In this document: one piece after another, positions 61 through 61,200 of the stretch
How positions within the stretch are numbered: position 1 is the first letter of the stretch
How the letters are laid out: the number at the start of each line of letters is the position of its first letter
DNA from: Guillardia theta CCMP2712
Taxonomy: Eukaryota; Protista; Cryptophyta
Length of the DNA stretch: 64,000 nt
Assembly (NCBI RefSeq): GCF_000315625.1
Contig: NW_005434654.1
Span: 66,273 to 130,272, forward strand
Direction: 5' to 3'
The notes under the pieces: generated by a model
Told to the model about the DNA's origin: nothing
The model's database searches: none
The model's input: the letters and a program-made list of their open reading frames with translations, nothing else
Program-made: the position numbers and the translations under genes

Positions 61-1209
61 TCAACTCCCCGATGTCCGAATCGGCTTTGCACTGAGAATT
101 GAGGGATCCCTTACGCTATGAGTGTCTTGGCAGCATTCATACACCAGCGCTGAAAAAAGCATCCTTATCTTGTGTTTCTGATCCTTCCTTCCATGGATCT
201 CATGGATGGCCGATTCGAGACTCTCACAAACATCTTTCTCCAGCTGCTGACTGGGCACGTCGTTGTCACCCATCATCACACCATACTGGTATACAAGAGC
301 CCCGTTCTCTTTCTTCTTCTGCTCTGCTGCCGCAGCATACAACAGAAGTTCTTCCCCCTCGTTGATACTCCTCTTGGACACGACGACAAGAGCGTCTCCA
401 TCATCCACCAGCTTCAGCTCTACATTCGCTGCTTCTTTTGATCCACAGAAATTGATCATGTCGATGATCGGCACCAGCGCAATCGTTTCTTCGCTGGTGC
501 CACCTTTCTCAGCAGGCAGAACAATCCTCATTCTCCTAGAAAGCTGAAGGATGAAAGCATGCAAGAATTCGGGCCAATCAAAATCTCCCTCCCAGTCGAA
601 CGAAGATGATGCAGAATCTCCATTCTTGTGCTTGAGCCATGCGTCTCGCAGAACCGTCCTCTTCTTCCTTATGGCACTCACGTACGGTATGTCACTGAAC
701 AACACCAAGTCCTCGTTCGAGGCATAGAAAGGATGCAGACCATCAAGTTCTTCTCTTCCGGGAAGTGCCTGCAAGTATCTCTCATACTGACCGTCACTGC
801 CTAGTTGGAACTGCTTCGCAATCTCTGCAGCAAGGGTTACCTCCTGCTGTTCAAGACCTGCCTTCTTGCCCGGCGCTAGGAACAAGCTTCTTGGAACCCG
901 CAGAAGCTCTTGTCCCCTGCGGATCGAGCTAGACGCCCCGACCCCTCTCACTTTCTCTCCTCCGTGATCGAACTGCCGGATTGCGATGGACTCGGCTTGT
1001 CCTCCGTTCCTCTGCAGCCATTCCAAGAGTTGATCGGATTCCAGTCGAATCTCTTCCTTCTTATCCATCCTTCTTCTGATGATCCTTTGCCGCACTTTGC
1101 CAGAAAACAGTACAAGAAGAGTAAGGAGGATGAGGAGGAGAAGAACGGCCGTTCTCCTCCTCCTGTGCCCCCTCAACGCGTCCTCTACCACCTCCTTTAC
1201 ACAGTTCAT
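61..1209 (-). CDS. SET-domain protein (Rubisco-LSMT/SETD3-like class) with N-terminal hydrophobic anchor
   Basis: Intronless ORF. Motifs: LLEWLQRNGG, RGVGASSSIRRGQELLRVPRSL, YLQALP, LVPIIDMINF, SINEGEELLL..YQYG. Hydrophobic stretch AVLLLLILLTLLVLF near the N-terminus. First in-frame ATG is at 1209. Confidence 0.75.
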   Translation of the reverse strand: MNCVKEVVEDALRGHRRRRTAVLLLLILLTLLVLFSGKVRQRIIRRRMDKKEEIRLESDQLLEWLQRNGGQAESIAIRQFDHGGEKVRGVGASSSIRRGQELLRVPRSLFLAPGKKAGLEQQEVTLAAEIAKQFQLGSDGQYERYLQALPGREELDGLHPFYASNEDLVLFSDIPYVSAIRKKRTVLRDAWLKHKNGDSASSSFDWEGDFDWPEFLHAFILQLSRRMRIVLPAEKGGTSEETIALVPIIDMINFCGSKEAANVELKLVDDGDALVVVSKRSINEGEELLLYAAAAEQKKKENGALVYQYGVMMGDNDVPSQQLEKDVCESLESAIHEIHGRKDQKHKIRMLFSALVYECCQDTHSVRDPSILSAKPIRTSGS

Positions 1210-1330
1210 CGCTCCATTCCGCCGCTGCAAATCTACCCCTACCCCTACCCCTACCCCTACCCTTTTCCTACCCCCTTCTTCTACTCGATGTTGTACCAGA
1301 AATACCCCACCTCTCTCCCCAACTGCACTG

Positions 1331-11610: not shown

Positions 11611-12983
11611 ATTCCTCTGCTCCAGCATGTCGCTCCGCTCCCGGAGTCTCTCGACTGGCATTTCCGAGGGAACTCGTTTCTTTTTTTTTCAGGAGGTGCG
11701 TGACCCATGTGCCTGAGATCGCAACCCCGCGTGACTGAAAGGAGAAGAGGCCACCTAAAACTGTTTTATTTGTACCAGTCTTTACAAAGTCCAGGAAATA
11801 CCTACTGCGTTAAAACCCCGTGACCTTGAGATTCATAGGGCGGAAGGTTTTTCTTTCTTTCTTTTTTTTTGTCGAGGGCAGATTGTTTCTGAGGTTTCAA
11901 AAGGTGGAAGATGGGGTGGGGAGTGAAAGGGGTGGGGGTACATATGATTAGGGTTTTGAGGTAATGAAGAGGGTACAAGCATTATTAATAAAAGTTCCAG
12001 GGGGGGTGAAGTTGATCAGCAAGGGGGTGCTGGGGGGAGGGGACCATAAATAAACATGTTACAGGTATCGTGTGATCGCTGACAAAGATATGAACGAGGT
12101 CGACTCGTGACCGAATGAAATCGAGACCTTCAGCACTTTTTCAGTGCGTGTAAGTTCCAAAGGATGCGAATTGCATATATCCCAAGATAACAACATTTTT
12201 ATGTATGGCCCTTTAAATACTTTTTGAGAGCATGCTCGTGACCGCTTTTACTATTTGGTAAAGCGTACACTGCGGATTGAAGAGCCCAGGGTAGGGTGGA
12301 TGGAAGGGGTAGGGGAGAAAATGCTGGCCCTGTTTATAGGGAACAGCACTAGAAGGGAGGGGTGGTCTGGTACTGGCGAAAAGGGCAGATGCCTGCCTTT
12401 TAGTCCAATGAAAGGGTGGTTAGAGAGATGTTGAGGGAGGGGTGGGATACGCAGTGACTGCCTGGAATAATTGTGGTGGGTAGTAATGAAACTGCTAGTT
12501 TGACGGTGGCACGGTCAGTAAAGGGAGACCTTCTCGGAGAACAGGCTGAAACTGCTAGTATTGGATTTATAAAAGATTTTTGGGGAGACGGGTCGCAGCG
12601 AGGGGTCGCTTCATGTGAAAGTCACGAGGGATTTTTAAAATTTGGGTTTTTACCATTTAAAAGCACAGAAATAAAGATTTTAAAGGATGATTGAGATTTT
12701 AAAGGGTGCCGTATCTGTTTAAAACATTTGTTCAATTATATGAAAAGCTCCTTTTTCGACTTCCACCTCGATCCGGCCGCGGACCTCAAGTGGAAGGCGC
12801 ACGATGGTATAGATAATGAAGAAGACAATTGCGGCGACTGGAAGGGTGCGAGAATACAAAGAATGCTTCGTTGGAATGCAGCGATGCGGCAATGCTTAGT
12901 TGATGCGCATTGAACAGCAAGTTTCAAACAACTCGCCTTGACTTTGTGTCTCCAAGAGCAAGGAGTCCTCGAAAGATTTCGAG

Positions 12984-14984
12984 ATGTCGGGACACCAGGA
13001 TTCTAAAACCCCGCATCTCCCTCAAGAAATAGTCAAGAATATCAGCAGTGGGCTGTCGGCAAACGCGCTTCTAGCCCTTCAAAGGAGTCAAGAGGCGATA
13101 TCCACCCTGTCTGGTATGGAAAAGGCAGCAACAACTGCTCCGATGGCCACCGTACCACCCCAAGTCCCTTCGTTGACGGATATGGGGATCTCGGGTTTGC
13201 TGCAAGCAACACGGTTTCCAAATCTTGCACCACAGAACTTCTTCCTCAACCCGACTGCCCCTCCTCTCCATCCTGTGCAGATCGTTCCCTACCTTGCAAG
13301 CCCTCAGGTGAGCGCGCTGCAGTCCAACCAGCTCTCGGAGCTCCGGCAGCAACAGGAAGATCAAGGGAGGAGACAGATGCTTAACCTCAACTTCGCGCCG
13401 AGCAGCCCGAATGTAATTGAGCAGAGGCTCAGGGACTTCTTTCAACTGCAGATCTCTACTGGAAAGATCAGGGCAGACAATGGAATAATTCTGCTCCAAG
13501 AAAGCTTTCCGGACGGGACAAGGACCTTCTGGAGAGCAATCAAAGAGACAGTTTTTCAGCCGGTCTATGGCGAGAATGTCGGCTATGGTCAGATTCTGCA
13601 GTCGTTGAGACAGAGTCTTAACATCACGTATGAAGGTGAAGGCACAGTGCCGTTCAGTGAGAAAGTCACCGTCCTCAGACCGATCCCGATGGTCAAGCAG
13701 GAGGAAAGGAGCGTCGAAAACCAACATCGTGTTCAATCTATGTCCCATAGTTCATCCCCTGCCCCTACGCGAAGGAAGAGGGGGAGGCCTTCTTTGGAAT
13801 CTCAGAACAAACCCCCTGGATCCTGTTCTCGGCTTCCTCCCAGTCTTGTCTGTCCTCCATGTAAAGTTTTGCACTGGAGATGTGGTGTTCGATGTGTGTT
13901 TTCTGAAGAGAATGGTGAGATGTATGTACCAAGAGACGAGCGCCATGCCCTGGCCAAGTATCTGAAGCGGAAGAAAGATGGAGGACAAGTCATTGGGAAA
14001 AGGGCGATAGCGACTTGGATCGCGAGCATGAGGAGCTCGGCAGCTCGCATGGAGGACTCTGAGGGCAGTCAGGGTAAGGAGAGTGATACGCTTCTGTCTA
14101 GCATTGATGTTGTCGCCCCGAACTCCCTCAAGAAGCAGGCGCTGTACAAGGAAAAGTTTGGGAACATGTTTCGAATCGGTTGTGTCTGTGGGAATGCGGC
14201 GATGAGAAGCATGCTGGAAGAAGTCTCGTCAGGCCTCAAGGAGTCAGAAGCCGTCAGCACTGAGTGCGAGTCAGGGCCCACTGACGGCCATGTTGCTGCA
14301 AGTACCAGCTGGACAGTTCCTTGGCCAGCCGACAAGAAGGTGGATCTACCCGAGGAGAAGTCGACAAGGAAAGAGCTCGAATTTCAGGGAGGGAGAACGG
14401 GTCTACCAGTCTTGAAGTCAGTCCAAGACCTGATAGAGTCTGTCGTCAAGACGATGGGGTTTGCTGGGAAGGAAGCTAGCTGTGCGACAGTTGAGTTCCT
14501 CTCCTTGCAGCGAAGCTCGGGCGACCAAATCATGCTTCACAAGGCAGCCCAGGTGGCTGAGATGACCACGGCCTCGCTGGTCATGCAGGATGCCTGGGTG
14601 ATCGTCGCACCGGCTGAAGCTGCTGCTGAGGAGGAGGAAGGCCGATGGGTCTTGACGAAGCCTGAGCTTGCTATCCGCTTTCGAGTCCGATCGGGGGAAG
14701 TATGGGGGATTTCTTCAGGCATGCAGGAGCAGATGCAGGCAACGAGCTCTTCGACTACCTATTCTCGAGGACATCTTTTCTTTGCTGTAATGCCGCCTTC
14801 AGAGGGAAGAGGGCTAGACTCCGACGATACAGCAAGGTTTGACAAGGATGACGATGACGAAGAAAGCGAAGAGCAGGCAGAGTGGAGCGATCAACAGAAG
14901 TCGTCGAACAACCCGACATCTTGGACAGAGGATCTGCAACGTGCGTGTTACTCTTGCCTTCGGCTTCGTCTGTATGACATGTGA
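12984..14984 (+). CDS. 666-aa putative nuclear protein with an AT-hook and a Cys cluster
   Basis: Long uninterrupted ORF. RRKRGRPS AT-hook/NLS, CPPCKVLHWRCGVRC, Gln/Pro-rich N-terminus. Confidence 0.75.
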   Translation: MSGHQDSKTPHLPQEIVKNISSGLSANALLALQRSQEAISTLSGMEKAATTAPMATVPPQVPSLTDMGISGLLQATRFPNLAPQNFFLNPTAPPLHPVQIVPYLASPQVSALQSNQLSELRQQQEDQGRRQMLNLNFAPSSPNVIEQRLRDFFQLQISTGKIRADNGIILLQESFPDGTRTFWRAIKETVFQPVYGENVGYGQILQSLRQSLNITYEGEGTVPFSEKVTVLRPIPMVKQEERSVENQHRVQSMSHSSSPAPTRRKRGRPSLESQNKPPGSCSRLPPSLVCPPCKVLHWRCGVRCVFSEENGEMYVPRDERHALAKYLKRKKDGGQVIGKRAIATWIASMRSSAARMEDSEGSQGKESDTLLSSIDVVAPNSLKKQALYKEKFGNMFRIGCVCGNAAMRSMLEEVSSGLKESEAVSTECESGPTDGHVAASTSWTVPWPADKKVDLPEEKSTRKELEFQGGRTGLPVLKSVQDLIESVVKTMGFAGKEASCATVEFLSLQRSSGDQIMLHKAAQVAEMTTASLVMQDAWVIVAPAEAAAEEEEGRWVLTKPELAIRFRVRSGEVWGISSGMQEQMQATSSSTTYSRGHLFFAVMPPSEGRGLDSDDTARFDKDDDDEESEEQAEWSDQQKSSNNPTSWTEDLQRACYSCLRLRLYDM

Positions 14985-15209
14985 AAGGGAATTGTTGTAG
15001 TTTAGGATACATCTTGCCCGGTGACTTGTGTAGGCTCAATCGTTCAGCGTTTCTTCAACCAATCTGACGGTCATCTCCTCACCATCTCACAAAGTTCTCT
15101 CAACTCCCAGGCTTAGTCGGAACCAGAAGAAATTCAGTCGTGGTCCGAATCTTCTTATCTCACTGTGTCACTGTGCTTTCACTCTGATGAATTCTTAAAT
15201 ATTCGGCAA

Positions 15210-15740
15210 TAAACTCAGCCTGCCACTGACCGGCTTCACGGCCCCCGACTGACTCGGAGGACGAGTCTCGGAGCCTTTCCGAAGGCTAAGCCTGAGCCCC
15301 GCAGGCTCAGCTTTCAAGTTTTACTCAAAGTTAAGCTTAGCTAACGGTTGCCGCACCGTGCACTGTGACGGTGCCGCAGTGCGGTCCGCCCTTACTGTGC
15401 CCTGGCACGGTGACCGTGCAGCGGCGGCTGACGTCCGATCGGAGTCCGATCGGACGGTCGCGGCCCTCAGGCCCGGTTTGGCAAGTTGATCGGACGGCCC
15501 GGGGGCACCGGGGGGGGCCGCCGGCCGCCGGCCGGCTGCGGGCGGTCCGATCCGATCATCGGATGTTCGGAGCCGCGTGAGCGGCGGCGCGGCGCCAACC
15601 GGGTGATCGGCACGGCCCGGCCCACTGCGGCCCGGGCCGCGGCCGGGTCACCGTCACCGGGACTGGCGGCCGGGTCGGGCCGCGTGCCGCTGTGCCGTCA
15701 ACTGAGTTCCGGCGCCCGACCTAAAGCCGCCCGTGCCCTA
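15210..15740. promoter_or_regulatory. GC-rich island 3 (upstream of EYA gene)
   Basis: TTACTCAAAGTTAAG at 15321; GATCGGACGG twice (about 15448 and 15488); CCGG/GGCC core. Confidence 0.5.
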
Positions 15741-21900: not shown

Positions 21901-22232
21901 GCGTTCACACTGTCCCCCACCGTCACAGGCAGATGGGGAATGGCCCACCCTAGTCTATGGCTGGAGGGGTAGATATATGGTCTTTGAGGGGTAGGGGTGG
22001 GCGACTTCTCTCCCCCGATAGGGCTTCTCTCCCCCGACAGTACATCTCCTCGTTCCCTCCACTCCCTCCTCCCCCACTCCCTCCCTTCATAAAGCAACCA
22101 GCGCTCTCCTGCTCCGACCTACCTCTGCGTATCCTTGTCCACAAGCTCGTTGTTGAACCCTTTCTATACCTATCCCTGTGCCCCACCTCACCAGCTTCTG
22201 CTCGCATACAAGGCTCTTGCTCTATCCTTACC

Positions 22233-23898
22233 ATGTCGACTGAGCAAGCTGCGATAGCCAGCAGCTTCAACAAATATCTTGAAATCCTCGAAGAGAACTT
22301 CCCCAGGTAACCTCCATGCTCTCTTTTCAGCCTACATGCTTGCGAACGATTTCCGATGTCTCTGACACACTTTCTCCGTCTGCAGAGCTGTGCCAGAGAA
22401 TGTCTTCATTGATCATGCCAACAAGGTGCTCAACAAACATGGCTTCACCTCCAAGACCTCCATCAACCTCGTCAGTCACTGCCGAGATGAGCTCTGTAGA
22501 CCCTTCACTGAGGCCATCGATTCCAGCTGGGAGAAGCCGAGCTTCAACATCGCCTCTCTGGCAGGCATGGTGTACTGCGGACGGACTGGCTTCAAGTCTG
22601 CCATGGCACACGCCCCGATCATAGACGGGAAGGAACGCTACGTCATCTGGGTAGCGTCCCATGTAGCTTTGGGGGAGGGGGAGCCTGGCATGGTCTACCG
22701 TCCTGGGCGGGAACACGCATCTGCAGCATGCGGAGCGCTGCTTGCCGCCCTGAGAGAGATTCAGTCAGGAAAGCTCAACGTACAGCTCGATCCTACCGAC
22801 CTTGAGATGTCTCTGCTGAAGCAGGAGCTCGTGGGCTACTTGCGGTATGGGCAGGTGCCGACGCTGGTGGAGCTGACGTATGCGGCACATGAGTGCATCC
22901 TGGCCGATGTGCAACGAACGGCCCAGCAGTCGGTGGACCGAGAGGCATGCGAGTACATCATCATCTCGGGGATACAGGTACATGGCGCTCATGAGAGCAA
23001 CTTCTTCTGGCCAGGAACCTTCGTCAAGTACACGCCATCGGGGACGGAGGACCTTTACGAGGAGTACGCGGCGTCGGTTACGGACTGGACCATCAGCGAC
23101 TGGGTGGATATGGAGTCTCTTGCTCTGCTGCAGAAGAAGGAGAGGGAGGCGAGGCTTGCTGTGAAGAGAGGCAATCTGAAGAGGTTGAGGAAAATGTCGC
23201 TTTCCCTCTCCAAGATCCGCGACAACATGCGACGGTCGTTGCTGCATGTCGCCGCCATGCACGGGAAGACGGAGATTGCCGAGTATCTCATCAAGTCGGT
23301 TGAGGACGGAGCGAGTCTGATCAGCCTGCAAGACAACCAGCACCTGACTCCGATGGACTATGCCGTGCAGTACGAGCATGACGAGATCGCAGAGCTGTTG
23401 ATAGAGCAAGGAGGAGGGCTGGAGGGGGAGTGGCTAGAGGAGGAGCTTGTCAAGGCTGTCTCCAAGTGTGACCTCACTCACCTCAGCAGGCTCATGTGGT
23501 ACGCTAAGGATATCCCGACGGCGATCAAGTCGAAGAACAAGGACGGCGAGTCGCTCGTGCACATCTGTGCAAACTCACGCGACACCAAGAGAGCGGACAT
23601 GCTACAGCTGCTCCTGTCCTTCGGAGCAGACGCAAACATCGTCGACTTCTACGGCAACAACGCCGTGCTGGCCATCCAGGAGAGGCAGGACACGGAGCTC
23701 CTGGATGTTCTTGATAGCCCTCAAGTAACTCTGGACTTGTCCTTGGCGAGTGCGGAGCTGCAGGTAGGAGCTCTTGCGCAGTCGACGATGCCGGAGACTC
23801 GTGCTAAGCTGCTCGGCATTTCTGTGCCCTCCTCTCCTGAATTAATGCCTTCATGCAACCGGCCAGGCTGTGGGCCCGCGGAAAGCATCGTCGAGTAG
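22233..23898 (+). CDS. LCIB/LCIC-family (theta-type carbonic anhydrase) domain fused to ankyrin repeats
   Basis: Exon 1 22233-22306, intron 22307-22385, exon 2 from 22386. LCIB motifs: SINLVSHCRDE, FNIASLAG..CGRTGFKSAMAHAP, VASHVAL..GMVYRPGRE..SAACGAL, GIQVHG. Ankyrin motifs: RSLLHVAAMHGKTEIAEYLI, TPMDYAVQYEHDEIAELLIEQGG, GESLVHICA, LLLSFGADANIVDFYGNNA. Confidence 0.85.
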
Positions 23899-25576: not shown

Positions 25577-26192
25577 TTCCACGAGCGCTCTCCGGGGGGG
25601 CGCGTGCGGCTTCTCTTTTTTTACCAGTCCGTTACGTCGCCGTTGTCGTGTTAGTAAAATTCGTTACAACAACCGTTGGAAATCGTTGAAGATCCGTTAA
25701 TTCTATGCCTTGCCTCCTGTTCCAGTCTGGAGACTACTACGAGGAGGGGTAGAATAGACGGAAAATATGGGGGTACTTGCACGGGATCTGAGGAGGGTGG
25801 TTGAAGTGAAAATGCGGTAGCCATGGCGGGAGTCTGCTGAGAGCGATTTGCGGGTATGTAAGAGCATCGTTGGATGTTTGAGAGGTTGACATGAACTCAT
25901 ATCCATGCAAGTAGCGTCTAAGAATGTTAATGACTTTCTCATTGCACGAGAAAGCAGAGATGTTTCATGGAGAGTCTTGTGTTAAGATGCATCTTCGTGG
26001 GTGTGCTGTGGCATGTAGTGGATGTTATGAAACCAGAGATGTGATATTTATGTCGACATGATAATGATGGAACACGATGCCTTGCTATCTTTGTTTTGGT
26101 TCATGCGATCCGTAGGATTTGATCGAATTTGACATCAGGAACATGATCATCTCAAGCCGCCCGTGTTTCATGCTGAGCTGAAGGATCGGAAG

Positions 26193-28604
26193 ATGGATCC
26201 AACGATCGATGACTTTGTCGATGAAAGCTTTGAGGTCGACAGGTTCGTGGTCCAGTATCTGGGAGCTCAAGATGACAACGACGACAACCTGGTCGGTTCC
26301 TTGATAGGCGACGCCTCGCTGCTGGATGCCGAGGACTTGCTCATCAAGGTCGGCAAATGCTGCCAGCATGTGGATAGTCTGAGACAAGATGCTCGGCTGC
26401 GGCTGCAAGAAGCGTCCAAGAATGCTGACTCGCTGTATTGGACTCACACGAACAGGGTAAGGTCGTTGAAGGTCGAGTCGCAACTGGTTCTGGAGAGGGT
26501 GCAGAATCTTGAGTCGGAGATCTCCACGGTTGGCAGCAAGGCAGTGAATGTTGGGAGGAGACTGGACCAGGTGAACAGACAAAGACGAAGAGCCCAAGAA
26601 GCATCCAAGGCGATCAAGATATACGACAAACTCTGCGGGGAGGAGGAGGACGATGAAGTGCTGCAGATGCTGGTTCCCAGGCAGGGAAAGCAGGACCTGA
26701 TGCACTCTGCTTTGATGATACGCAAGGTGGAAGCAGCTGTGAAGAGCAGCACGAGTGAAGGGCACGAGAGGGCTAAAGTAAAGCTTGAGGAGGCGAAGAA
26801 AAGATTCGAGCACTTCACGTTGCAGTGCTTTGATGACGCGAACGAGGTCTTCGAAGGGTCCAGAAATCCTTCAGCCCTGCACGAGATGAAACACAGTGCA
26901 GAAGCTCTGACATGGTTCAATGGTGGACAGACAATCGTGCAACATTACATAGCGACGCGAAAGTTCTTCATCGACCCAACCTACATCCTCCAAGACAGGG
27001 CAGAGATAGACCAGTTGGATTCTTTGAAGTCAGCTTCATCGATCTTGGATCGAATCGTGGATGAGTTGGTCGACTTTGCTGACCATGAGGTCACAGTGAT
27101 CCCGCAGATCTTCCCCAACACTGAGAGGGTGATGATTGCTCTGGTACAACGAATGTGCCTTGAACGGTTACAACCGGCCATAGAGGGATTGCTGGACAAC
27201 ACGATGGAGCAGTTTGGGCTGCATGATTGGCTAGAGTTGTTAGAGAACGTCGTCTGCTCATGCCAGCGTCTTCATCACAGCCTAGGAACAGACAAGCACG
27301 AGACTGGGGAAGTCATGAGCCAGCAAGCCTTGGACGAGGTCAGAAACCTCATAGAAGACTCACTACTTCAGTATCGCGATGCTTTCCTTGCGCGGCAGCT
27401 GGAGGCGCTCCAGGTTGACCTGCAGCGTTACTTTCCTCAGTGGACGGACGAGCATGTCGGGATATTCCTCAACGACGAATCTTCCATGCAGCAAGGAAAG
27501 AGGGAAACTCCCCCTTCCACACAAGAGCCAGAAGCCATGGCGCTGTCGGACGTGGCGCTCAGGTCGGACATGCCCGATGGCATCGAACAGAAACGATCCA
27601 TGCTCGTGCATACTGCCATGATCGACGATGCGCTATCAAGAGTGGGTCAAGCTGTCAAGCGATGTCTGAGGGTTCTGGAGGACGAGCGCAGACCGCAGGC
27701 TCTCCAGGCGCTGATAACCGCTCTGGTGGACAAGATGAATGAGTTTCTCTTCTCGGCTGTGCGGTACGCGTCATCCATGATCAAGCAGGAGCTGGCGGCC
27801 AACAAGGAGCCGTCGGTTGCGATCGTGTGCTACTTTGTCGTCTACTCCTCGAAGAAGCTCCAAGACTTCTCGGCAGCTGAGGTAGTCCCCTACTCCTCGT
27901 CCGACGTCCGAGCCCATGCAGCCATCACAGACGTACTCTCCAAGGCGATGACGTGGACTGAGAGCGCGACGTCTCATCTCGCGACTACATACGCCAAGAG
28001 CCTTCTCAGCTTCTTCGAGTCAACGTTGCAGAAACAACCGAAGACCGACTTCCTGCACGTCAAGAGCTCGGGGGAAGAGCTTGGGCATCTCCCTACCGAT
28101 ACATGCGTGACGTGCGTCAAAACCCTACGGGTAGCGAGAGACGCGTGGCTGTACAACGGGCCAACCCCTCTGCACGGCAAGAAGACGTCCTTCGACAAAT
28201 ACAAGAAGTTTGTCAGCTCAGCTGAGAGGTCCCTCGATGTCAACACGCTGAAACTCTTCTCCTCCATCGCAGATCGCCTCCATCAAACCTTCTCGCGCCA
28301 CATCTGCCGCTTCACCTATTCGCAGGAGGGAGGTCTCCGCCTCCTCCAAGACCTCAAGCAGTATCAGCAGATCGTGGGAGATCTCTTCGCTCACGGGCAC
28401 GCAAAGGAGATCGAGGAGCTCCGTGAGGCTGCCAACGTGCTCGTACTGTCCTTGCACAACGTGGAGCTGATGGTGAAGGAGAACGCATGGAGGGAGGAAG
28501 ACAGAGATCGTATCATTGACATGATCATCATGAGATCTGACTGGTCTTCTCTTCGTCCGAAGGTGATCCAGAAGCTACGAGCCTTTCGGCCGGATCTCAA
28601 ATGA
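26193..28604 (+). CDS. SEC10: Exocyst complex component Sec10 (EXOC5)
   Basis: About 800-aa intronless helical ORF. Typical features: VGRRLDQVNRQRRRAQEASKAIKIY, FNGGQTIVQHYIATRKFF, IPQIFPNTERVMIALVQR, HICRFTYSQEGGLRLLQDLKQY, LREAANVLVL. Confidence 0.85.
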   Translation: MDPTIDDFVDESFEVDRFVVQYLGAQDDNDDNLVGSLIGDASLLDAEDLLIKVGKCCQHVDSLRQDARLRLQEASKNADSLYWTHTNRVRSLKVESQLVLERVQNLESEISTVGSKAVNVGRRLDQVNRQRRRAQEASKAIKIYDKLCGEEEDDEVLQMLVPRQGKQDLMHSALMIRKVEAAVKSSTSEGHERAKVKLEEAKKRFEHFTLQCFDDANEVFEGSRNPSALHEMKHSAEALTWFNGGQTIVQHYIATRKFFIDPTYILQDRAEIDQLDSLKSASSILDRIVDELVDFADHEVTVIPQIFPNTERVMIALVQRMCLERLQPAIEGLLDNTMEQFGLHDWLELLENVVCSCQRLHHSLGTDKHETGEVMSQQALDEVRNLIEDSLLQYRDAFLARQLEALQVDLQRYFPQWTDEHVGIFLNDESSMQQGKRETPPSTQEPEAMALSDVALRSDMPDGIEQKRSMLVHTAMIDDALSRVGQAVKRCLRVLEDERRPQALQALITALVDKMNEFLFSAVRYASSMIKQELAANKEPSVAIVCYFVVYSSKKLQDFSAAEVVPYSSSDVRAHAAITDVLSKAMTWTESATSHLATTYAKSLLSFFESTLQKQPKTDFLHVKSSGEELGHLPTDTCVTCVKTLRVARDAWLYNGPTPLHGKKTSFDKYKKFVSSAERSLDVNTLKLFSSIADRLHQTFSRHICRFTYSQEGGLRLLQDLKQYQQIVGDLFAHGHAKEIEELREAANVLVLSLHNVELMVKENAWREEDRDRIIDMIIMRSDWSSLRPKVIQKLRAFRPDLK

Positions 28605-58254: not shown

Positions 58255-61200
58255 TTATTCTAGCAAACTCCTCAAGTACTCCTGTGTTGAGATCGGGTCA
58301 ATGTCATCATGTCTCTGTGCAGCTGGATGAGAAGTTACCTCTTTGATCTCCTTGATCCGCTCGTCATGCTCTCCTTCCAACTTTCTATGATATCTGTGGC
58401 AAACGTTGAGCACAAACCACAACCAAGAAACATCGCAAGAGCAGTTCAGCACAAACCATGACCAAGAAACATCACAAGAGCAGTTCAGCACAAACCACAA
58501 CCAAGAAACATCGCAAGAGCAAAGGAAGATCGTATCACCGGTACTTTGGCATTATATACGGCTCGTTTTCGTAAGACAATCCACTGCGTGATTCCTCAAT
58601 GTTCATGTCTTCGCTCTCCCCGGTTTCATTTGTTTCTGTTCCCGCAGTCGCATCCGCAACCTTGGGTTCATCCTGATCACCCTGCTTGTCCTGCCCATCC
58701 TTATCATCCTGCCCATCCTGCCCATCTTGCTGATCTTGCTCCTCGTCCTGCTCGTCTCGCGCCTGTTCCACGTTCTCGACGGGGATTTGAAGGAGCGAAG
58801 CCGTCAGGTTGAAGTCATCCTTCATCTTCACATCTACATCATGCAAGGGTTGCTCGCTCAGGCTGTTCTCTCCAGCAAAGGCTGCAGTGTCGCTACGATC
58901 GGCCTCGCCCTCGTCCCCCTTCTTCTGCGTCCCCTCGACCGGGTCGGCGACTCGTGTCTTCTTACCGCTGATCATCTTCTCGATGTGAGAACGGAAATGC
59001 ACCTTTAAGTTTTTCCTCCAACTGGGCGGATGAGAGATCGAGAGCGGGTTCCACACTCTCCCTCCTCCCACATCCCTCCAGCGGGTTGACTTGACAGACA
59101 TGGAGTCGTCGGAGATCAGCGTGTTGGTCTCCTCCTCCTCCTCCCCGCCATCTCCCACCAGAGAGAAGTTCGACATGCTCACCTTCGTCCCTACATCCCT
59201 CGCCTCCTCTTCTCTCTCTCTACCCGTCCAAGAAGGGATTCGAGCGAGTTGCTCCTGCACCAGGAAACTGCCGTCGAGAGGAGCCGCCCGGTCGTTGCCG
59301 AGGAGGCGAAGTCGGGGGATGATGTGACGGAACTCAGTGAACTTGCGAGCGTTGGTGTTCTTCTCACTCCAGGGTTTCCTTGCGTACCCGAAGCCTCCTC
59401 CTGTAGCCAGACGGAAACCATGAGACCCGTCCGCGTTCACGTAAGGAAGGTGCTTGACTCGCGTTCCGTTGTTGTCCAGCCTGTTGAGCACCAGGCGACT
59501 GCTCCATCGCACCAGCTCAGTCCTCTCGCGCGCTGCCTCCAGCATGGCTGCATCCCTCCGCATCAGCGCCGGCACTTGATTCTCCGGGACAGGGAACTTT
59601 GCTTGGAGGGCTGCGACTTTGAGGAAGATGGAGTCGAGGGTTATGGCAGGAGGAAAGAGGAGGTGGAGAAGAAGCTCCTCGGAACCGCTGAAGAACGCTC
59701 TTGTCCGCACCTCAGGGATGGAAACAAACGCAACGCAGACGTCGGTGATGAAGGAGCTGCGGTCCTCGCTGGCCAGCAGCGCCTCCCAGAGAGGGAGGAG
59801 GTTCCAGAGGGGGAGGACGCGGGAGAAGAAGGTGGTCAACCATGGGCTCACAAACTGCTCAGGCTTGATCTTCAGCTCCTCGAACATCCTCTGCCCCAGC
59901 TCAGGGTCTGTCTGGAGAATCCTGTCCTTCACCCTAATAGCAACGGCGCCGACCACGTCGAGGCTCGTCCCCGGAACGTTCTCCCAATGGCGGAAGAACT
60001 GACCGGCAAGGCTGACGAAGAGGGAGAGCGTGTCGGCCTCTACCTGATCCAGCCTGCGATGCTTGACGCTCCTCTCTCGATCCTCCAGCCCGTCCCTCAC
60101 GCCATGTTCAGGATCGCGCATGCAGATCCAGAGGACGGGAGCGAGAAGGTGATGCATGTCGGGGCTGTACTCCACCTGTTGGTCGATCATCGTCAGACGG
60201 CGAGGAGAAGCCAAGAGGGTCAAAAAGTGGAAGAAGAAGCAGGTGGGAAAAGAACAGATGGAAGGGCTCGAAGCTTTCAGAGGAGGGGAGAAGCGGAGAG
60301 AGAAGAAGATAGGAGGAGATAGGAGAGGAAAGGGACCTTAGGATGGAGACGGATGTAGGTGTAGATGATACGAGTCGTGACATGCATCAGCTCGTCCGGG
60401 AGCATCACACCAGGGTAGACGCCAAAACAACAGTCGTAGTGCATCTCTTGAAGCCAGTAGAGCTCCTCAGCCTTTTCAAAACGTACATAAATACTCTTGC
60501 CTCCCTCCACCACCAATCCTCGTCCGCGTCCACTCCTCTTCCCCATCCTCATCCTCTATCCTTTCCTCCCTTCCCTTCCTCATGTTAAATCCTACATCTC
60601 CTAGTCATCGTCAATCACCGTACTCGCAAACCCCCCCCCCCTCTTCCCCCGCACCTCGTCCCGCAACACACTCTACTGCTCCTCCACTCATATCTCGCAT
60701 GTTGCCTCTCATCATCCTCACCTCGGCATTGGAGATTATCCCCAGGCTCTCCCGCAACTGCAGCTCCCGCATCCTCTCAGGATTCCCCGGCTTCTCGTCG
60801 GGCATGAGGTGATAAAGCTGAGGGTAAGTCCCGTTGTACGTGTCGTACTGAATCGCATGCCAAAGATCTTGAGCTGCAAAGAAATCTCTCCACCGCTGCT
60901 CCAGAGAACGACCTGCTCCTTGCTGAAGGATGCAGTCACACAGTCACACAGTCACACAGTCACACAGTCACACAGTCACACAGTCACACAGTCACACAGT
61001 CACACAGTCACACAGTCACACAGTCACACAGTCACACAGTCACACAGTCACACAGTCACACAGTCACACAGTCACACAGTCACACAGTCACACAGTCACA
61101 CAGTCACACAGTCACACAGTCACACAGTCACACAGTCACACAGTCACACAGTCACACAGTCACACAGTCACACAGTCACACAGTCACACAGTCACACAGT

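Follow-up and report, generated by a model that had tools for sequence, protein, structure and literature searches.

An LCIB/theta-type carbonic anhydrase domain fused to ankyrin repeats in a predicted cytosolic protein of the cryptophyte Guillardia theta

In the cryptophyte Guillardia theta CCMP2712, a single gene joins a domain of the LCIB/theta-carbonic anhydrase (CA) family to a series of ankyrin repeats. The gene is found in a stretch of 64,000 nucleotides (NCBI RefSeq assembly GCF_000315625.1, contig NW_005434654.1, positions 66,273 to 130,272, forward strand), here called the window, where it occupies positions 22233-23898 of the plus strand and consists of exon 1, a GT-AG intron and exon 2 (Table 1). 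The predicted product has about 528 residues. An earlier interpretation, made from the letters of the DNA alone and referred to below as the sequence-only reading, had placed the gene at exactly these positions, which is borne out by the start codon, the splice sites and the stop codon; it had also proposed that the protein is a cytosolic CA tethered by its ankyrin repeats to a partner, or a sensor-adaptor for CO2 or bicarbonate.

The intron begins at a consensus donor, CAG|GTAACC (22306/22307), and ends in CTGCAG at 22385. The codon that it splits encodes Arg, which gives ENFP-R-AVPENVFIDH across the spliced junction. Evidence for the two-exon model comes from three independent comparisons, i.e., transcriptome homologs run without a break through the junction motif LFPRAVPE.VF (DLFPRAVPEQVF in P0005 and RRFPRAVPEPVF in P0019), a paralog in the same genome has a phase 2 intron (73 nt) at the same codon, and when the two copies are aligned as DNA, conservation is seen in the exons but in neither the intron nor the upstream DNA. 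A search of metagenome contigs with six peptide patterns found no transcript of the gene itself, and a word search of proteins returned no 100%-identical protein; in both cases records of the organism's own genome may be excluded from the data searched.

Table 1. Positions of the gene, its exons and the main features of its predicted product in the window, together with the paralog in the same genome; residues are numbered along the exon-2 product
Feature	Position	Strand	Description
Exon 1	22233-22306	+	start codon ATG at 22233; 24 codons + 2 nt; peptide MSTEQAAIASSFNKYLEILEENFP
Intron	22307-22385	+	phase 2, GT-AG, 79 nt; GTAACCTC...GTCTGCAG
Exon 2	22386-23898	+	503 codons + TAG stop at 23896-23898; LCIB domain, ankyrin domain and tail in one frame
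LCIB/theta-CA (beta-CA-like) domain	22387-23082	+	residues 1-232; Pfam match 22402-23022
Zn-ligand Cys32 (HCRDELCRP)	22480-22482	+	aligned to the Cys of LCSDEVTRP (PtLCIB4) and LCRDEV (CrLCIB)
Active-site Asp34	22486-22488	+	two residues after Cys32; aligned to solved LCIB structures
Active-site Arg38	22498-22500	+	Arg of CRP in CRDELCRP
His75 (AMAHAP)	22609-22611	+	equivalent to PtLCIB4 His88 and CrLCIB His162; nearly invariant in the family alignment
Zn-ligand His92 (ASHVAL)	22660-22662	+	aligned to GSHVGV (PtLCIB4) and FPHIAI (CrLCIB); nearly invariant
Arg105 (first Arg of YRPGRE)	22699-22701	+	equivalent to CrLCIB Arg194; invariant column
Zn-ligand Cys115 (AACGAL)	22729-22731	+	aligned to ACCGSA (PtLCIB4) and CACGAL (CrLCIB); invariant column
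Linker/cap helix and ankyrin solenoid	23104-23721	+	residues ~240-445; five to six helix-pair repeats
C-terminal tail	23722-23895	+	fast-evolving, predicted disordered; pLDDT 34-57; 50% identity to the paralog
Paralog, LCIB-ankyrin gene	G000:C14:392778-394407 (locus L002 1350-2979)		same start, intron position and architecture

Because the Pfam, structure-database and folding searches were made with the product of exon 2 or with parts of it, the results described below refer to this exon; exon 1, i.e., 24 codons and the split Arg codon, gave no Pfam match. The domain that opens exon 2 matches the Pfam family PF18599 (LCIB_C_CA) with an E value of 2.6e-44 and 151.6 bits (cut-off 25), covering model positions 6-219 of 223 and residues 5-211 of the exon-2 open reading frame (ORF), and a six-frame search of the genome with the same profile gave 154.6 bits at this locus. 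The best sequence matches among solved structures are Chlamydomonas LCIB (CrLCIB, 5k5w, E 4e-30) and LCIC (5b5x, E 1e-28), followed by the LCIB_C_CA-domain protein 6kfs and by PtLCIB4 of Phaeodactylum (5b5y, E 5e-11).

Alignment to the solved structures showed that the Cys-His-Cys zinc triad and all other checked active-site positions are kept in the protein, in agreement with the sequence-only reading, which had recognized a complete domain with the Cys of CRDE, the His of SHV and the Cys of ACGAL. In PtLCIB4 the zinc ligands are reportedly Cys46, His102 and Cys126 (numbering of Jin et al. 2016). This numbering agrees with the mutant chains, because counting along 5b5y puts position 47 on a Ser that is replaced by Arg in 5b60 (S47R) and position 88 on a His, as the name H88A demands. 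The counterparts in CrLCIB of His75 and Arg105, i.e., His162 and Arg194, are named as important residues in PMC5876011, and the column of Arg108 is likewise invariant or nearly so in the family alignment. The residue that follows Cys32 is Arg, as in CrLCIB, while PtLCIB4 has Ser at this position.

An AlphaFold2 model of the exon-2 product, computed as a single chain from a 32-sequence alignment, has a mean predicted local distance difference test score (pLDDT) of 86.5 and a predicted template modeling score (pTM) of 0.73. Members of the family form homodimers or higher oligomers whose active site lies between subunits. Residues 1-232 form an alpha/beta domain (pLDDT ~85-96) with the beta-CA-like fold expected of the family. 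When this domain of the model was searched with Foldseek, the top eight matches were all crystal structures of LCIB-family proteins, with template modeling (TM) scores, normalized to the target, of 0.74-0.84 (0.77-0.84 for 5b5y, 5k5w and 5b5x). By every criterion of sequence and of modeled fold, the protein belongs to the LCIB/theta-CA family, although its accessory domain is new and its predicted location unusual.

The ankyrin repeats follow in the same frame. Five Pfam ankyrin models match above their cut-offs, i.e., Ank_2 (58.1 bits, 1.4e-15), Ank (49.6 bits, 3.2e-13), Ank_3 (42.6 bits), Ank_4 (40.3 bits) and Ank_5 (34.6 bits), such that both families of the profile check that had been set beforehand, LCIB_C_CA and Ank, were found. 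The model places helix pairs at residues 240-269, 285-304, 322-340, 347-371, 390-411 and 426-443, mostly with pLDDT >90, which corresponds to five to six repeats where the sequence-only reading had counted four to five. Both a sequence search of solved structures and Foldseek matched this region to designed ankyrin repeat proteins (DARPins), gankyrin and other ankyrin solenoids. A chain of ankyrin-1 (7tw3_G) is one of these generic matches, and a search of the ESM Atlas returned only generic ankyrin clusters at a chance-level score of 0.90.

The modeled chain is continuous and of high confidence, except for a dip to pLDDT 63-71 in the linker between the two domains and for the final ~50 residues, which are of low confidence. 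No transmembrane or hydrophobic segment was found in the C-terminal tail. An alternative 5' splice site, CAG|GTAGGA at 23763/23764, which could add a membrane-anchor exon, was considered and rejected because the protein of the paralog stays in frame beyond this point (VGALAQS.MP..RAK).

A composite gene of this type could in principle be an artefact in which a neighboring LCIB gene and an ankyrin gene are read as one. This explanation, for which no supporting observation was found, is vanishingly improbable and was rejected, being refuted by the continuous reading frame: both domains are covered by a single uninterrupted frame of 502 codons (22390-23898), the paralog has the same continuous frame, complete transcriptome ORFs of relatives contain both domains, and the model chain is continuous apart from the dip in the linker.

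In the genome assembly (87,145,349 bases in 669 contigs), a six-frame search revealed only two LCIB-family loci, the gene in the window and its paralog, and both are fused to ankyrin repeats. The exon 1 peptide of the paralog, MSSAQAEIASSFHQYLERLEENFP, is the counterpart of that in the window and has the same start. The two proteins are 80-81% identical, with a synonymous divergence (dS) near 1. The ratio of nonsynonymous to synonymous divergence (dN/dS) is 0.076 in the LCIB half and 0.111 in the ankyrin half; the tail is free to vary. These low ratios, at dS near 1, indicate that both halves have been held by selection since an old duplication.

The conservation of the LCIB half bears on the question of whether this domain is an enzyme at all. 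As an alternative, it could be a non-enzymatic module, either structural or one that binds CO2 or bicarbonate, and the ankyrin repeats would then pass on a signal, i.e., the protein would be a sensor-adaptor. Ankyrin domains are typical adaptor modules, and the Arg after the zinc-ligand Cys is of the CrLCIB type rather than the Ser of the active PtLCIB4; for PtLCIB3 and PtLCIB4, activity that seems to be constitutive has been described (PMC9614477), while recombinant CrLCIB and LCIC displayed no CA activity in vitro despite intact sites, according to those parts of PMC5876011 that summarize Jin et al. 2016. We nevertheless judge a sensor-adaptor to be distinctly unlikely, as the catalytic positions are strictly kept throughout the family, dN/dS is as low as 0.076 and a Pfam search of the protein found no signaling output domain. 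Furthermore, CrLCIB-type proteins, with which the protein has the CRDE motif in common, reportedly act as CAs in vivo (Kasili et al. 2023, cited in PMC13655443).

Characterized members of the family usually reside in plastids, a feature that does not define the family and that is not predicted for the protein in the window. A crude hydrophobicity test of the sequence identified no signal peptide, no transit peptide and no N-terminal hydrophobic stretch. The peptide of exon 1 has four acidic residues, a single basic one and no hydrophobic run, which is unlike both a signal peptide and a mitochondrial presequence. The same test did detect genuine signals, because the relatives P0028, P0030 and P0032, which lack ankyrin repeats, open with a hydrophobic signal and then Ala|Phe, a combination characteristic of proteins imported into complex plastids of the red type. 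An N-terminal hydrophobic stretch was absent from seven of seven ankyrin-fused relatives of the same clade (P0002, P0003, P0005, P0006, P0007, P0008 and P0012), whose sequences all begin with Met and reach upstream past the conserved FP(R/G) motif.

A comparison of the DNA upstream of the two copies led to a similar result. The similarity begins at 22225, 8 nt before the ATG, and BLASTN and TBLASTX revealed nothing shared further upstream (8 kb upstream of the copy in the window against ~8.8 kb of the paralog), so that a conserved upstream targeting exon is unlikely as judged from these alignments. In the window the frame of exon 1 is open over a further 92 codons, up to an ATG at 21957 (21957-22232, plus strand), in a pyrimidine-rich stretch with CTCCCTCC repeats. 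The potential extension of 92 residues has no N-terminal hydrophobic core and is not conserved in the paralog, where an in-frame TAG is found 21 nt before the ATG; the stretch is probably a 5' untranslated region or promoter.

Targeting to the plastid, the periplastidal compartment or the mitochondrion could still be hidden in an upstream exon, in an extension from the ATG at 21957 or in a non-canonical signal. Such targeting would be consistent with the open frame between 21957 and 22233, with the failure to find a transcript of the exact gene and with the N-terminus of P0034, a distant ankyrin-fused relative (35% identity), which is rich in Ser and Arg and resembles a transit peptide. We consider it very unlikely, given the stop codon in the paralog, the lack of conservation between the copies over 8 kb upstream, the nature of the 92-residue extension and the absence of signal peptides from the closer transcriptome relatives in a test that detects real ones. 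The sequence-only reading had thus correctly described a protein without a targeting peptide. Because the N-terminus of P0034 could be a transit peptide, a cytosolic location may fail for part of the family.

The fusion is not confined to this genome. A word search of public proteins identified 37 relatives, 23 of which carry both PF18599 and ankyrin families, and a search with the ankyrin region gave nine proteins with E values of 1e-8 or lower, each of which has PF18599 and four of which represent further clusters. To the extent that the sensitivity and length window of that search allow, the ankyrin module is thus restricted to LCIB fusions. Altogether, the fusion is found in at least 26 public protein clusters, one of which bears an automatic UniRef name. 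One of the carriers is another cryptophyte, Proteomonas sulcata, and others are from MMETSP transcriptomes and marine metagenomes; transcriptome-derived ORFs marked as complete hold both domains. The search for the architecture among public proteins therefore showed that it recurs. Of the statement in the sequence-only reading that no characterized protein with this architecture was known, one part stands, in that no description was found in the literature searched, and the implied rarity does not. Public protein sets contain the LCIB-ankyrin fusion under names assigned automatically, but as far as that literature shows it is undescribed. Descriptions of genes for inorganic-carbon handling in cryptophytes were likewise not found in the literature searched, and a 2026 review of pyrenoid-based CO2-concentrating mechanisms (PMC13655443) mentions neither "ankyrin" nor "cryptophyte".

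A tree of the LCIB domain was built by maximum likelihood (32 rows, 233 columns) and rooted on the two most distant rows, i.e., the root is arbitrary. Ankyrin-fused proteins are distributed throughout the ingroup, and the proteins without ankyrin repeats are nested among them in the same clade, with LCIB domains 49-62% identical to that in the window. With such a root, the tree is most simply read as a single old fusion, after which the ankyrin repeats were lost or replaced several times. Hydrophobic segments near the C-terminus occur in some of the relatives: P0019 has a C-terminal tail anchor and no ankyrin repeats, P0004 has ankyrin repeats and two C-terminal hydrophobic segments, and P0012 has ankyrin repeats and a hydrophobic segment at residues 560-594.

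Other relatives differ in further ways. In P0021 and P0022 the LCIB domains are near-identical to that of P0002 and are followed, after TMTKYTAQ, by low-complexity sequence rich in Cys, His, Arg and Thr, with no ankyrin repeats; these are probable gene calls that read into an intron on genomic contigs, rather than true ankyrin-less forms. In P0024, P0025 and P0026, from metagenomes and transcriptomes of the Joint Genome Institute (JGI), an N-terminal pyridine-nucleotide disulfide oxidoreductase (PF07992 and PF00070; dihydrolipoamide-dehydrogenase-like) is fused to the LCIB domain. These three proteins are sister to the plastid-targeted, LCIB-only proteins in the tree and represent another LCIB architecture for which no description is known.

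From these data, a functional role of the protein can be proposed, namely that of a CA that faces the cytosol and that the ankyrin repeats attach to a partner on a membrane. We hold this reading to be probable, if only moderately so, while its final elements, i.e., the partner and any role in carbon concentration, are what we infer. The protein would be synthesized in the cytosol and remain on the cytosolic side, where the LCIB domain, by analogy with the family, would interconvert CO2 and bicarbonate. The ankyrin solenoid would bind a protein partner at the membrane surface, presumably through its concave face as is general for such solenoids, and would thereby place the reaction next to the site at which inorganic carbon crosses the membrane. 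The partner may reside in the outermost plastid membrane or in the plasma membrane, and could be, for example, a bicarbonate carrier of the SLC4 type; two SLC4 loci are found in the genome (C36:370930-372388 and C92:194235-195862). The outcome would be either to trap CO2 that leaks from the plastid or to feed substrate to the transporter. Recapture of leaking CO2 is a role that has been proposed for the stromal LCIB/LCIC (PMC5876011, PMC10927497).

C-terminal membrane anchors are found in several proteins of the clade, and the family therefore seems to work at a membrane surface, which lends indirect support to the plausible earlier idea of a tethered CA or sensor-adaptor. Relatives with such an anchor, instead of or besides ankyrin repeats, would reach the same end by direct anchoring, and their C-terminal anchors would put the LCIB domain on the cytosolic side.

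A more far-reaching version of this proposal, which we regard as speculative and rather unlikely, is that the LCIB-ankyrin protein is a single-chain "transport metabolon". Here, the ankyrin repeats would clamp an active theta-CA onto a bicarbonate carrier or channel on the cytosolic face of the outermost plastid membrane or the plasma membrane, resulting in a vectorial flux of carbon. The protein would then constitute the core cytosolic step of a new, cryptophyte-type CO2-concentrating mechanism, and the tail-anchored relatives would be an alternative solution.

Several observations weigh against a docked CA with a role in carbon uptake. The protein has its CRDE motif in common with CrLCIB and LCIC, i.e., with those proteins whose recombinant forms were inactive in vitro in the summary referred to above. 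Ankyrin repeats bind many kinds of partners, and nothing specific singles out a transporter. Because no transcript of the exact gene was found, the 5' end of the gene is supported by comparison alone, and if translation began at the in-frame ATG at 21957, the product of this copy, though not that of the paralog, would be 92 residues longer. In addition, the genome contains about ten or more alpha-CA loci (17 exon-level matches) and four or five beta-CA loci (6 exon-level matches), and, with so many CAs present, a cytosolic CA need not serve carbon concentration.

The last point leads to a simpler account, in which the protein is a housekeeping cytosolic CA that has no link to CO2 concentration and buffers pH or supplies bicarbonate to carboxylases, and in which the ankyrin repeats serve oligomerization, stability or regulation instead of docking to a membrane. 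The intact active site and the predicted cytosolic location would both be explained, the many other CAs of the genome could serve the plastid, and theta-CAs outside the plastid are common in groups other than diatoms (PMC6723447). On the other hand, the LCIB/theta-CAs characterized in the papers cited here all act in CO2-concentrating mechanisms, the membrane-anchored relatives suggest action near membranes, and the ankyrin module is conserved, specific to LCIB fusions and under purifying selection, which implies a specific partner. On balance, we assign a housekeeping role a small but real likelihood.

The implications depend on which of these accounts applies. If the ankyrin repeats dock the enzyme to a carrier or membrane, the protein offers a handle, i.e., a pull-down bait, on a cytosolic step that is still missing from the carbon uptake of algae whose plastids have four membranes, and also a compact part composed of a CA and a tether for engineering of CO2-concentrating mechanisms. 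If it is instead a housekeeping CA, the result is a modest improvement of annotation. Both LCIB-family genes detected in this genome are of a predicted cytosolic, ankyrin-bearing type that is conserved across many marine algal transcriptomes.

The neighborhood of the gene adds no functional clue, because neighboring ORFs at 15-26 kb of the window gave no family matches. Just downstream, at 26163-28604 (plus strand), one long exon encodes the exocyst subunit Sec10 (Sec10_HB, E 6e-48, and Sec10_N). Farther away, an ORF with a RabGAP-TBC domain (E 7e-13) is found at 58535-60223 (minus strand) and one with a weak match to the SET domain (E 4e-4, under the cut-off) at 61-1230 (minus strand). A single-exon ORF of 666 residues at 12984-14984 (plus strand) has no Pfam match. 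A JGI contig of 2420 nt (transcript sample 3300017164, L003) is 100% identical to and colinear with positions 12799-15218 of the window, which indicates that the same strain was present in that sample and that this orphan gene is probably expressed. Elsewhere in the genome, a six-frame search with the cryptophyte phycoerythrin alpha family PF02972 gave 23 matches at the level of exons, against none in 14 control genomes, which marks the sequence as cryptophyte nuclear DNA; several of these matches are found in close pairs (C47, C57, C117 and C223).

A comparison with known systems places the predicted location of the protein outside the range described for characterized members of the family, since the characterized LCIB/theta-CAs in the literature compared here work within plastids or in a compartment inside the outer membranes of the plastid. 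The sequence-only reading had described LCIB, LCIC and the diatom theta-CAs as mostly plastid-localized. Outside diatoms, plastid targeting is reported to be absent from most theta-CAs of cryptomonads, haptophytes and the remaining stramenopiles (Nonoyama et al. 2019, PMC6723447). Because of this report, the missing plastid signal is not new in itself.

The Chlamydomonas proteins LCIB and LCIC (5k5w and 5b5x) share with the protein in the window the fold (target TM score 0.79-0.84), the CRDE motif with Arg after the zinc-ligand Cys, and the positions of the zinc ligands, His and Arg. They differ from it in being chloroplast stromal proteins that gather around the pyrenoid, form an LCIB-LCIC hexamer and have no ankyrin domain, whereas ankyrin repeats make up ~210 residues of the protein in the window, which lacks a transit peptide. 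The diatom theta-CAs (PtLCIB3, PtLCIB4, Pt43233 and Tp-thetaCA2) are similar with respect to the Pfam family, the zinc triad and the fold (5b5y, E 5e-11; target TM score 0.80), but have bipartite plastid signals, reside in the thylakoid lumen or elsewhere in the plastid and lack ankyrin repeats; PtLCIB4 also has Ser in place of Arg after the zinc-ligand Cys. PPAP12, identified in the pyrenoid proteome of a chlorarachniophyte (PMC10927497), is likewise an LCIB-family CA outside the stroma of an alga with a complex plastid, but enters the periplastidal compartment, and ankyrin is not mentioned in that study.

Within the clade itself, the relatives without ankyrin repeats are distinguished from the protein in the window by a signal peptide with the Phe motif, a C-terminal anchor or an N-terminal flavoprotein domain. 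A functional analogy to the proposed role is found in the red cell. There, the repeats of ankyrin-1 hold band 3 (SLC4A1), and CA II is reported to work beside band 3. The CA of the erythrocyte assembly is of the unrelated alpha class and is a separate chain, and the likeness to ankyrin-1 is that of a generic repeat. The two systems would nevertheless have in common a tether and a CA placed beside a carrier, which in Guillardia theta would be combined in one polypeptide.

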